From: Hyphochytrium catenoides
Lineage: Eukaryota; Protista; Hyphochytriomycota
Assembly (NCBI GenBank): GCA_900088475.1
Contig: FLMG01000529.1
Location: 1-64,000, forward strand
Length of the DNA: 64,000 nt
Reading direction: 5' to 3'
In this document: piece after piece, positions 44,610 to 50,831 of the stretch
Numbering within the stretch: the first letter of the stretch is position 1
Layout of the letters: every line of letters begins with the position of its first letter
Position numbers and translations under genes: made by a program
Notes under the pieces: model-generated
What the model was told of the DNA's origin: nothing
Database searches by the model: none
The model's input: only the letters and a program-made list of their open reading frames with translations

Positions 44610-47600
44610 ATGAGAGAAGAAAGGAGAACGGGCAGCGAAGGAAGAGGAACAAGGCCGAAATCCAACAACTCGCAGTCACGACTACAAAGGAGCGATTCTG
44701 GAACATGGAGGTGGGCGGCAGCGTTCTAGACATAAGTCTTATATAGATATATATGTGTACGGTTCTGATATGGCGACTATGAAGGCAAGTCTGGGCCAAG
44801 TACCACTACCTACCAACATCACCAGACAAATGGATCTTCCTTGTCACCCTAGGCATTATCGCTGCCTTACTAGCGTGAGTATTGGCTGTGATCTGGCCGA
44901 CCAGTCCGTGATCTTACTCATCTCACATGGTAGGGAGGTTGTAAACAGCGTGATCAAAGAGCTTGAACGGGCGCGTGAAGCAATATATGAGGCTGAGGTA
45001 AAGTTAGCTCCAGCTCTTGTCGAAACACCGTAGTACTGATGATTGTTTGCTGTGCATAACAGTCCATCTATGTCGCGTTCTTTGGGTCGTTGCTCTGGTG
45101 CGTTATCCTTAGCTTGACGGCCTCGTTAGTAAGCCAAGCACTAAGCCCGGTGGCTGATGGATCAGGTAAGATTTAAAGATATAAAGAACCGAGAACGACA
45201 CTAAATAGGTGGGCAGGCATCCCTGAAATGAAGGTCATCATGAGCGGTAGTAGCACGCGGAGTCACACTCTCAGTAGGAATGTCCTTACGCTGTCAACTT
45301 TATGCGCTAAAGCCACTGGGGCCATCATGGCCATAGGAGGTGGACTCTCTGTGGGCAAAATGGTAAGTAGAAGCGGTGGTATTCAGATCCGGTGCTCGTT
45401 AGCTTGACATCGCTAATAATTCCGTTCATTGGAAGGGTCCCTTTGTGCATATCTCTTGTATCATAGCCCACCAATTAGGAAAGTTACCATTGTTCCGGCA
45501 CCCTGACAGCCCTCCGATCAATCGACAGTTCATTGCCGCAGGTAAGCTACTTATGGCTTTTTTCTTCCAAGTGCCTGCGTTCCTAGAAGAAGTCACCCTC
45601 ACACTAACTGCCTCCTCACGTGCTTCTCTCTTATCCCTATGATCACGTCCTGCGATGCCAAAGGAGTGGCAGCAGGTGTTACGTCAGTCTTCGGTGCACC
45701 CATCGGCGGGGTCCTCTTTAGTATCGAGGTTACCAGCACCTATTACTCGGTCAGGTGGGAAGTCTATACACTCATAAAACAACGAGTATGCGCTTATTCG
45801 CCTCGCAGTAACCTTTGGCGGGCTTTCATCTGTGCTGTGAGCTGCGTACTAACTTTTATGTACATCAATGCCTACAAGGTATGACAGTTGATCACTGCAT
45901 CTAAAGTCTATGGCACGGCTTCAGTTAAAATACATATACGACAGGAAAGTGAGCTTTTTGTCAAAACCTCTTTCCCGAAGTTTGATGTCAGAAGCGCCGA
46001 GATATTCTCCTTCACTGTCTTGGGTATGCTCTCCGGGGTAGGTCTCTCGACGCCCACGTCACTGCTCCAGCGCACTTGTTGAAGGCTCCTTTAAGTCGTT
46101 TTCTCCAAATTCTTGCCATACTCTATATCTTCTTTGGCTTTTTTCTCTCTTTTAGTTCAGTTTCACGGTTGCTTTTCCTCAGTCGCTGTATAGAGCTTCT
46201 ATTTGAGGGCGTTCAGCTGATATTCTGGGCTGTTACAGCTAGTAAGCGCAAGCTTTGTCTACTCCGTGAAGGCTTATCATCAGTGGCGTTGTTCGCCCAA
46301 ATATGTACGTGCGCCTTCTCAGCATATTCTCTCAGACCCCTAACAAGAGCACTCATTTGCATAGATGCCCCGTACAAGAGCGGGTGTGGTCAGCTTGTTG
46401 GCTGTATTCACGTCAATTCTCACATTTCCCCTCATAGTCCTGCGCAAATCTGACAGAGAGATTCTCAACGAGATGTTCACTGATTTAGAGTTAGCATCTA
46501 CCGACAGGCAGACTTGGAGCTCTATCTCATCGAGCGCTCTTCTCTTCCTCTTTACGGTACGCAGTTTGACCATCTCTTTCCTGTCACCCAGCCTCATATA
46601 CGCATGCGCTCATACGTACGGAAAAGGTTGTAAAGTTCGTTCTTACGGTGGCGCCATGTGGTGTGCCTCTGCCTTGCGGCCTTTTCACTCCAGTCTTTGT
46701 TGTGGGAGCTGCCTTTGGCCGGCTCTATGGAGAGTTACTTAATCTCGTTTTTCCAAGGGAATCCATCTCAGCAGCATGTACGTAGAAGGCTTTATTTACT
46801 ACCTCACTTCCAACCCTTACAATCGGAATATGTAGCTTATGCGGTGGTCGGGGCTGCAGCAGTAGCTTCAGGAGCTACTCACACCGTTTCGACAGCGGTC
46901 ATCGTCTTTGAACTGACAGGCCAACTTTCTCACATGATCCCCGTCATGCTCGCTGTGCTCCTAGCGTATTCAGTAGCTGGCTTCTTCACCAGTTCGGTCT
47001 ATGACTTGTTGCTGGAGATGAAGGGCTTGCCCTATCTTCCCGCTTTGAAAAATGACAGTACACGTGAGGTCCCTGTGCATGTGAGTGTGAAACATCTGAA
47101 CTAATAAAATGACTCACTCCTGTCTTTTCATCCCGTAAACCTCTACGTTCCGCAACTCTGTTAACCTAAGCCTCCTTATATTAACATTTTTAGGCTGTGA
47201 TGAGAAAGCAGTTTGAGTTCCTCACTATACGAAGCACGTACCAGGAAGTGCTAGACTTGGTACGTTACGTAATTGGGAAGCGACGGGTCAAGGGTAGAGC
47301 TACGACTAATTCTTTCGCCAATGGTCTAGCACACATGAAAGACTATTTCTCATTCTTCCTATCGCTTATCATGCTAACTTGAGGTGGAACTCACTGACGC
47401 AGCTGCAATCAAGTTCATTATCCCCCTATTTGGACAACTTTCCCCTGGTCAAGGACGCGAAGGGTATGATCCTAATGGTAGGTATATACCCTCGACTTTA
47501 ATTCTGGGATGGATCCTGATCTCTACGTCTACGGTTCTTGACCTATAAAACCAACTTCCTGAATTGGGCCCTTGTGAGCTAACTCAGTTTCAAACTCAAT

Positions 47601-48587
47601 ACCTCGCGGTTCCGCCTTCTTGAGGCACACACCAATTCGCCCAACACTCTATTATCGACTGTAAAACACTCTTTGTCTGTTGATGACCCCTACCAGGGAG
47701 CTGTCAAACGCTCTGATTTGGAAGCCGTTGTCAGAGCTAAAGGCAAGCTTTCGAGAAAAATGGTGAGCAATAAAGGATGACATGGTTGCGCCAATATGTC
47801 GTCGCTAACGGTTTTCTAGATGGAAGGAGTGGACCCGGGCACAGGACGAATGGCGAGGCACAACAAGTCCCTTAAGCACCGGCGGAAGGGCCCGAACTCA
47901 CCAAATGACCCTTCTCCAGAAGAGCACCCTCTCATCCGAGACGGTGACGATCAGCTGCCACCAGACGACGCTAAGGAAGCTGCTCTAACCGTATTGTCTC
48001 CGCGAAGAGCTCAAAAACGAACTCCTCCAATGGATGAGGAGCGAGGTTTGGAAGGTAAATCCTATTCGGGAGTTATGCGTTCGATAGGTTATAACAGCCA
48101 CCTACTATTAGAGGAGGGATCCCGCCACAGTGCTGCCGAGTCGAACGACAATGCTTTCTTCTCTTCCGTGGTAAGAGTGTGCAACATAGCCTCTGAGTTT
48201 ATTTCTATAATTCTCACCCTCCCTTCGCATCTATCTGCTACTCAGGTGCACTTTGGGAAACCTCTAAACAGTGGATCAACCGCATACACTGCTATCACTA
48301 TCGATCCTTCTCCTCCTCAGGTGCCCTCCCTGATGCCTCTAGGCCAGTTACACAGTATGCTGGCAGCTTGTCTCTGGACTGGAGTGTATGTGCTTGAGGC
48401 AGGAAAGCTGGTTGGGGTGTTGGATGTCGACGATCTCTGCCGGCGGAGAAGCCGATGGAGTGGGAGTGACAACTATGGGCCCACGCCTCTGTCTCCTCCT
48501 AGTATGGAGCTTGCCAACAGCTTCGACGAAGAGCAATTGATTGACAGGGCTGACTTGCGATCTCTATCTCAGTCTCCTCGAGTTTAA
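44610..48587 (+). CDS. CLC chloride channel of the ClC-1/ClC-2 type with two C-terminal CBS domains (multi-exon)
   Basis: [92 protein letters not shown], and CBS2 [15 protein letters not shown]. The start is uncertain. Confidence 0.93.
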
Positions 48588-48616: not shown

Positions 48617-50831
48617 CTACTTTTTCCGCAAACCGTACTTCCTGGGCGACTTCGCAGCTCCCCGCTGAAAGTGCTTAGCCTGCACTTTGTGGCCTCTTGA
48701 GGAGGCAGCTTTCTTTCCTCTTGGGCCACGACCAGAAGCACCCCCAGTAAAGCCTTTACTTTTAGCTGATCTGAACCTGAGTGCAGCCTCTTGCCGGCGG
48801 CCTCCAGAATCGCGGACTGGTTGGGCCATTGATGCAGCGGGCCTCGCACCCCTTGCCTGTCCTTTTACCGCCATTTTTCCTTTACCCCTCGTCTTGCGCG
48901 GCAGGGTACCTTGCCTACTCGCCTTTTTGTTGCTCTTGAGCTTTGCAGGATGAGAACTGGCGGGACTCGTCCGTCTCCCCTCTGTCAATCCAGCAGAAGC
49001 GACCTTATTAGGCAGCTTTGGAATAGGAGCAGTGTATCTTTCTTCTTCTTGTGAATCTTTCTGATTATAACGGCTTGACAGCCGCCGAGTGCGTTTATGT
49101 TCCCCGGGCTCCCCCTTCGCCGCCCTCACGCTGCGGCCAGGGCGGGCAATATCACCTCCTCGGATTCTGGTACCAGAAGATTCACCCTCAACTAGTGAGG
49201 ACTTAATCATGGCTCCTTGCTCCTCTAGGGCCCTCTTTATTGTACCGATAAGCTGCTGGTCTTTTGATGTGTAAAGGACCGTCACGTGGCCCTTCCTGCC
49301 AAACCTGGCGGTTCGCCTACAGGGTTCAAAATAAGACAAGAACATTATCAGTGGGCATATTGCCACAATGGCGGAGCTAATGGAACAGTAAGAGGCTTAC
49401 TGACCCTGCGCGGTGCAAGTAGTCTGTGATGGTCTTTGGCGCTTCCAACATAACGACATGATCAATATCGGAAATATCGAGTCCTCTGGCAGCCACGTCC
49501 GTTGATAGAAGGATGTCGACAGAACCATCCAAGAACTTCTGGAAGTTCAGATCACGGAAGTAGGCGGGCATGTCACTGTGAAGATTTACAGCCGGGAGGC
49601 CATTCTCTGATAAATAATGAGCAGCGGCTTGCGCCACAGGCCCTGAGTTGCAAAATACTAGTGTCTTGCGAGACTGCTTCCCCGTAAGAACAGTAGCCAG
49701 TGTACGAAACCGTTGCGCTGGAGCCTAAGAACGTTAGTCAGTTTCAACGCACATTTGGAAGCAGTGTTAGCCACTAGTAAGGGTATTCTTAGGTCTCTTG
49801 GGGCAGTACCGTCTTGACAAAGTCTTGCTGAAGACGTTTGGGCGCCTGATGAACAGTTGTGCCTGTGACCTACGTATGTTACGTGAGTTACCTCCAGCTA
49901 CCAGCCTTTGAGTGAATAATCTTACCACTTCAATCCCCGCGAAGGACTTCTCTATGACCTTGTCAAGCGGGGATTGTACAGTCGCGGCGGCCAGAATGAA
50001 CTGTGGCTTCCGTCCACGGTACTCTGCTCCTTTTCTAACGTTATCAACTATGGTCTCCACGTCCTGCTTGAAACCAAGAGCTTTGCTAAACATAGTGTCG
50101 GCCTCATCGATGGCAACCCAAGAGCAATACGACAGATGGAGACGCTCAAATTTGCGATGCGTCAGCAGACGTCCTGGGGTCGCAACGAGTAGGTCAAAAG
50201 GCTTTCTTAGGTCTGACTTCTGCCGGCCGATATCGCTGTTCCCTGTTGCAACTACCGCCCGGAACTTCACGTGATGCGCCAGCATACCAGCCACCGATGC
50301 AACCTGCCGGGCGTCTTCAATAGTCTTAAGGGAGATATAGATTTTTGATAGTCTCACCTGCTCAGCGAGCTCCTTGCTTGGGACTAACACCAAACCCAGG
50401 GGCCGACCTGGCTTATCGTGAATGCCATGAAGAGCTTCCCATCGCTTCAACTGGTGAATAATAGGCAAAAGGAAAGCCAGAGTCTTCCCTGTTCCTGTTT
50501 GCGCGACACAGAAGACATCTACGAAGGAGATAGGGGTCAGTTAGGAAATTTTTTCTCATGCTGATGTTAAATCAACAACTGGCTGATGCAAGCAGCTGCA
50601 CTTACCCTTTCCTGATAGAGCTTCCTCTACTGTTCTAGCTTGAATCTCAGTAAGTGAACTGATATTGGCATTCGCAAGTGCCGCCTTGATCTGAGGTAGG
50701 AGCTGGTCAAGCGTCGATGACGGAGTGTGCCCGAACCTCACACCACTGATATCGCTCCAGAACCGTGACCGTTTGACAGGCAGCAGTCCTCTGGAAGCGA
50801 AGCCCCTCCGCAACAAAGCTCCAGGAATCAT
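48617..50831 (-). CDS. DEAD-box RNA helicase, probably organellar (DDX28/RH39/RH50-like), with a basic C-terminal tail
   Basis: TEIQ, AQTGTGKTLAFLLP, LVPSKELA, ATPGRL, IDEAD, STDVAARGLD, YLHRAGRTARFGRKG. N-terminus LLRRGFAS is presequence-like. Confidence 0.9.

Follow-up and report, generated by a model that had tools for sequence, protein, structure and literature searches.

A CLC gene of Hyphochytrium catenoides with a predicted methionine in place of the gating glutamate

A CLC gene and its gating motif

The window analyzed here, the whole 64,000-nucleotide stretch of Hyphochytrium catenoides DNA, is eukaryotic in character, with a GC content of ~49% and short introns. A CLC gene occupies positions 44610–48587 of its plus strand. 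Built manually by tracing open frames and splice signals and then checked by script, the gene model comprises 18 exons and 805 codons plus a stop. Its 17 introns, all GT-AG, measure 51–219 nt, and the single stop lies at the end of a frame that remains unbroken across all 805 codons. The least certain parts of the model are the start codon with the first exon and intron, and the call of an in-frame intron 17. This putative intron (48171–48245, 75 nt) is free of stops and was called from splice signals alone; the frame stays open either way, giving 805 aa if the intron is removed and 830 aa if it is kept. Database and family searches were run exon by exon, and the joined translation was used only in the frame check, the alignments and the trees. 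Downstream of the gene, a DEAD-box helicase-like gene on the minus strand (49767–50468), recognized by an ATPGRL-type stretch and a DEAD motif, is seemingly unrelated to it.

Judged by its translation, the gene belongs to the CLC family by its profile matches, its anion-site motifs and its central tyrosine, and departs from the family at the gating glutamate. Three exons clear the Pfam Voltage_CLC (PF00654) cut-off of 24.8 bits, scoring 37.4, 45.1 and 34.7, and the exons are colinear with a profile of relatives over positions 89–566 and through the second CBS domain. Among solved structures, the best relatives of the exon encoding helices Q and R are ClC-2 (81 bits), cmCLC (75 bits) and ClC-1. 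Exon 5 (45217–45362), which ends in G-G-G-L-S-V-G-K-M, aligns with residues 82–123 of cmCLC and 77–117 of ClC-2, the alignment running to the lysine just before the gating glutamate, and exon 6 (45436–45541) aligns with cmCLC residues 126–147.

The hallmarks of the anion pathway are likewise in place. GSGIPE, with its central serine, lies at 45159–45227 (residue 118), the codon of its second glycine being split by intron 4 (45166–45216). The motif FSIEV (45717–45731, residue 222) places a valine (codon 45729–45731) at the proton-glutamate (Glu-in) site. The GxFxP anion-site motif reads GLFTP (46678–46692, residue 392), and the central tyrosine, a TAT codon at 47000–47002 within S-V-Y-D (residue 478), aligns with Tyr578 of human ClC-1 and its ClC-2 equivalent. 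The serine, the valine and the tyrosine had each been named in an initial annotation of this DNA, and all three stand. The cytoplasmic C terminus, encoded by exons 14–18 (47194–48584), has two CBS-like domains. The Pfam CBS match is weak (14.5 bits, under the cut-off of 24); the second domain scores 39 bits against the relatives' profile at 48139–48453 and is 38% identical in tblastn to residues 827–882 of one relative, P0028, and the first domain was recognized by eye.

Against the family motif G-K/R-E-G-P, the gene keeps the frame of the motif and replaces its glutamate with methionine, giving GKMGP (residues 166–170). This departure is compatible with membership in the family because ClC-K likewise deviates at the gating glutamate. 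Read directly on the plus strand, GGC (45354–45356), AAA (45357–45359) and ATG (45360–45362) are followed by a donor, gtaagt, from position 45363; the intron ends in tggaag, with the acceptor ag at 45434–45435, and GGT CCC TTT GTG CAT begins at 45436. Removal of this phase-0, 73-nt intron 5 (45363–45435), which hits a TGA if read through, yields G-K-M-G-P-F-V-H across the junction, as initially annotated. The ATG codon thereby specifies Met168 at the gating-glutamate (Glu-ex) position, a column occupied by glutamate in 29 of 29 diverse reference relatives.

Could another splice pattern restore GKEGP in the mRNA? The intron does end in GAAG immediately before GGTCCC, a superficial likeness to a glutamate codon, but this GAA does not share the reading frame of GGT CCC, and no acceptor precedes it. 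We enumerated all GT-AG, GC-AG and AT-AC pairs near the junction that keep the frame and are free of stops. None of the 11 choices produces [KR]EGP, in keeping with the initial claim that no GT-AG choice yields glutamate, and 45363–45435 alone among them restores the G-K-x-G-P spacing of the family. Alternative splicing to glutamate is thus rejected on sequence, and we regard it as vanishingly improbable. At least two bases would have to change to turn ATG into GAA or GAG, which excludes a single-base sequencing error as the cause of the methionine. We conclude with considerable confidence that the gene truly encodes methionine at the gating position.

Intactness of the locus

Of 51 near-invariant columns defined from 29 diverse Glu-bearing relatives, 48 are kept. 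The three changes are D68N, which is common to the paralogue C74, L128M and E168M; all other near-invariant positions of the pore are conserved. Met128, an ATG codon at 45240–45242 in helix D, stands in a column that is leucine in 28 of 29 reference relatives. In maximum-likelihood trees the terminal branch of the gene measures 0.64–0.76 changes per column against medians of 0.40–0.55, and several paralogues have longer branches. A dN/dS analysis is unsuitable here, since silent sites are saturated in comparisons with the nearest relatives (~40% identity).

The assembly (4759 records, 61 Mb) contains one copy of this locus and seven CLC loci in all; each of the remaining six has G-[KR]-E-G-P. 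Two of these paralogues, C74 and C2091, have coding regions broken by runs of N (assembly gaps), and C74 also carries a long in-frame stretch between helices that resembles an unspliced in-frame intron. A word search of a protein collection with the open frame around exon 5 (45177–45404) returned no matching fragment, and an exhaustive comparison of the helix Q-R exon with representative proteins yielded nothing identical; neither collection thus includes the product of this gene.

The intact frame, the single copy, the retained columns and the ordinary branch length together argue against decay. The initial annotation had held that an unexpressed pseudogene would undo its reading, and on the side of the DNA the 17 canonical introns, the 805 open codons and the 48 of 51 retained columns speak for an intact gene. 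The best explanation of these features would be a functional, single-copy CLC gene that carries methionine in an intact, constrained-looking frame and is presumably expressed. One alternative holds that the gene was recently disabled or is unexpressed, or that methionine represents one allele or a local assembly fault and the working form has glutamate. Expression is a prediction, and the published H. catenoides genome, if it is the one analyzed here, is diploid (~2.75% SNPs), and its short-read assembly, at 312–610x coverage, merged the haplotypes (PMC5795050); that work describes 4758 scaffolds plus a mitochondrial record and also reports a transcriptome (PMC5795050). Against this alternative stand the canonical introns and open frame, the near-invariant residues and branch length already described, the presence of one copy only, and the two changes within one codon that separate ATG from GAR. 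We consider it unlikely.

Relatives and the recurrent loss of glutamate

The helix Q-R exon, searched exhaustively, and a profile search together gathered 279 related proteins. In 171 homologue motifs the gating position is glutamate in 152, alanine in 10, glycine in four, serine in three, and valine and methionine in one each. None of the 279 relatives is a close orthologue (more than ~47% identical), the best reaching ~38–47% over matched exons. The alignment of orthologues proposed in the initial annotation thus found relatives, but none close enough to judge whether the methionine is conserved.

Maximum-likelihood trees place the gene as sister to a fully supported clade of oomycete CLCs, with support of 99, a position expected for a hyphochytrid and in keeping with the protist host proposed at the outset. 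In the CLC phylogeny the gene groups with these oomycete proteins, outside the group that unites Capsaspora with animal ClC-2 and ClC-K-like channels; it neither descends from the animal channel clade nor is an orthologue of ClC-K. The tree is best explained if the gene is an orthologue of one oomycete CLC clade, within the eukaryotic branch that also holds ClC-0, ClC-1, ClC-2, ClC-K and cmCLC.

Within the sister clade, the seven sequences from Saprolegniales (Aphanomyces, Saprolegnia, Achlya and Thraustotheca) read GKEGP, and 11 sequences from Phytophthora, Globisporangium, Albugo and Logan-derived data read GRAGP, GRGGP or GRSGP. The Glu-less proteins of Phytophthora, Globisporangium and Albugo are P0014, P0017, P0018, P0020, P0021, P0183, P0219, P0233, P0234, P0256, P0266, P0271, P0272 and P0273, and such orthologues with alanine, glycine or serine are maintained across many species of these three genera. 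One of them, P0183 from Phytophthora ramorum (1007 aa), consists of two tandem CLC units, one with GRAGP and one with GRGGP, that belong to different subclades; it probably represents two adjacent genes fused by annotation. Glutamate is kept in neighboring protist clades and in the animal ClC-2 group with Capsaspora.

A single loss shared with Peronosporales is rejected, as an AU test disallows uniting the Glu-less groups (p = 4e-6). Parsimony leaves a tie at two steps each, between two losses of glutamate and one loss followed by a regain in Saprolegniales. We favor two separate losses, one to methionine in this gene and the other to a small residue along the peronosporalean line: the replacement residues are not the same, and a regain would need exactly glutamate. 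Taken together, the sister oomycete clade, the AU rejection and the placement in the tree indicate that loss of the glutamate is recurrent in the hyphochytrid-oomycete lineage and separate from that of vertebrate ClC-K. The initial suggestion of convergence with ClC-K is accordingly upheld to this extent: the loss appears independent, in a stramenopile clade far from animal ClC-2 and ClC-K.

Other Glu-less proteins in the sample are P0208 and P0231 (GKAGP), P0162 (GKVGP, in the animal group) and P0026 (GKMGP). P0208 and P0231 are near-identical protist CLCs that mark another independent loss in a different clade. No GKMGP protein was found besides this one and P0026 (UniParc UPI0006077CEC, 906 aa), which was rejected as an orthologue: it is an animal-type, ClC-2-like protein with phenylalanine at the position of the central tyrosine (S-F-F-D). 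Segments of P0026 are repeated two or three times, and it is likely in part an artefact of assembly or of the gene model.

A second position deserves attention beside the gate. Ten residues past the first glycine of GSGIP, in helix D, leucine occurs in 90 of 93 Glu-bearing relatives. The Glu-less lineages differ: the residue is methionine in the present gene (Met128) and in P0162, phenylalanine in the oomycete clade and isoleucine in P0026, and leucine is kept in P0208 and P0231 alone among the five lineages. The leucine is thus changed in four of five Glu-less lineages versus three of 93 Glu-bearing proteins, and may co-vary with loss of the gate over five independent events. That recurrent loss of glutamate (to methionine here and to alanine, glycine or serine in Peronosporales, Pythiales and Albugo) came with a linked change in helix D is a combined proposal that we find doubtful. 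If the link were true, it would point to an unrecognized coupling of helix D to the outer gate, and the natural series of gated and ungated orthologues would permit a comparison of mechanisms in a poorly resolved zone between exchangers and channels. The methionine form might in addition be a hydrophobic or oxidation-sensitive gate.

Predicted transport and comparison with known CLCs

In studied CLCs the gating glutamate and Cl- compete for the outer site, and the pore opens when the glutamate is protonated (PMC5362633). Once the glutamate is neutralized, channels lose voltage- and Cl-dependent gating, and the exchangers ClC-ec1, ClC-5 and ClC-7 become passive Cl- conductors (PMC5362633). Replacement of glutamate with methionine would remove the residue that serves both gating and proton coupling in the pore, as the neutral side chain of methionine could be neither protonated nor compete with Cl- in the manner of an anion. 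The predicted outcome is a passive anion conductance, uncoupled from H+ and without the glutamate fast gate, with residual regulation through the common gate and the CBS domains. The same outcome would be expected on a channel-like or an exchanger-like scaffold, because neutralization of the glutamate gives passive conductance in channels and exchangers alike.

The scaffold itself is harder to classify. The initial annotation had described the rest of the protein as channel-like; the residues it named are present, but they do not establish that the protein is a channel. No motif predicts whether a CLC is a channel or a transporter, and cmCLC is an exchanger despite the threonine at its Glu-in site (PMC12639529). 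The non-acidic valine of FSIEV is accordingly non-diagnostic of mechanism (PMC12639529). The same work leaves protist sequences intermediate between cmCLC and the animal channels in an unresolved 'transition group' (PMC12639529), and the protist members of the branch to which this gene belongs fall in or near it.

Our main explanation is that of a functional gene whose methionine-for-glutamate replacement yields a passive, H+-uncoupled conductance without the fast gate, because methionine can neither carry the charge nor shuttle the proton. We hold this reading to be somewhat better than an even prospect; the term 'ungated' in particular would carry over to this protein what mutants of other CLCs show. 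A serious rival, to which we give a modest chance, is a pore that is gated in another way or partly occluded. Methionine is long and hydrophobic, unlike valine, alanine or glycine, and Met168, in or near the outer anion site, could partly occlude that site. It might act there as a hydrophobic plug, leave gating to the common gate alone, or make gating responsive to methionine oxidation; alternatively, the protein might conduct poorly and have another role. The other natural replacements are all small (alanine, glycine, serine and valine), which makes methionine an outlier, and the otherwise near-invariant leucine of helix D is also methionine in this gene. Yet electrostatics gives a neutral side chain no cause to sit in an anion site, several neutral replacements open the gate in studied CLCs (PMC5362633), and the remainder of the pore is fully conserved. 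If the passive, uncoupled conductance is the correct reading, the protein likely serves physiologically as a constitutive shunt for anions, osmoregulation being one example.

The same gate thus appears to have been lost several times in a protist lineage, with varied replacements and on a scaffold that may be that of a channel or of an exchanger. Such recurrent loss is of more interest than a single gene, and the methionine gene is not a lone oddity. To our knowledge, ClC-K is the only natural Glu-less case among the CLCs that have been studied. Among mammalian CLCs, ClC-K is described as the sole natural case (PMC5362633). The literature we searched, with incomplete coverage, held no report of Glu-less oomycete or protist CLCs and no description of a natural methionine at a CLC gating site. 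It likewise held no glutamate-to-methionine gating mutant and no functional data for methionine at this site in any CLC, and the string GKMGP returned unrelated peptides only. Saprolegniales with glutamate, Peronosporales with alanine, glycine or serine, and H. catenoides with methionine would constitute a natural set of orthologues that differ at one residue. This set addresses what the glutamate contributes outside the animal channels and whether 'transition' CLCs are channels or uncoupled exchangers.

Among the closest known systems are mutants in which the same position is neutralized: ClC-0 E166A/Q, ClC-ec1 E148A/Q, ClC-5 E211A and ClC-7 E245A, which yield either open channels or passive Cl- conduction without coupling (PMC5362633). 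Unlike the present gene, these are laboratory-made, and no methionine version was found in the literature. cmCLC (3ORG), like the product of this gene, comes from a protist, has a non-acidic residue at the Glu-in site and falls in the same major branch of eukaryotic CLCs. Among solved structures it matches exons 5 and 6 best, and it scores 75 bits with the helix Q-R exon, but it retains the gating glutamate and is a Cl-/H+ exchanger. The oomycete orthologues are the nearest relatives, at ~38–47% identity in a sister clade with support of 99–100. FSIEV or FGIEV and the tyrosine of S-x-Y-D occur in them as well, part of their clade is Glu-less, and our literature searches turned up no functional study of any of them; in contrast, their Glu-less members carry alanine, glycine or serine at the gate and arginine rather than lysine before it.

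ClC-Ka and ClC-Kb (bovine ClC-K, 5TQQ) share with the gene the serine of GSGIP, the central tyrosine, a non-acidic Glu-in residue and a neutral gating residue. With its natural valine (Val166), ClC-K is open over a wide voltage range, shows weak voltage dependence and has a near-linear current-voltage relation (PMC5362633). The two are nonetheless non-orthologous, with methionine here and valine in ClC-K, and in the comparison with the helix Q-R exon ClC-K reaches 58 bits versus 81 for ClC-2. By its residues and its place in the tree, the H. catenoides gene resembles ClC-K in its missing gate, yet is assigned outside the ClC-K group.
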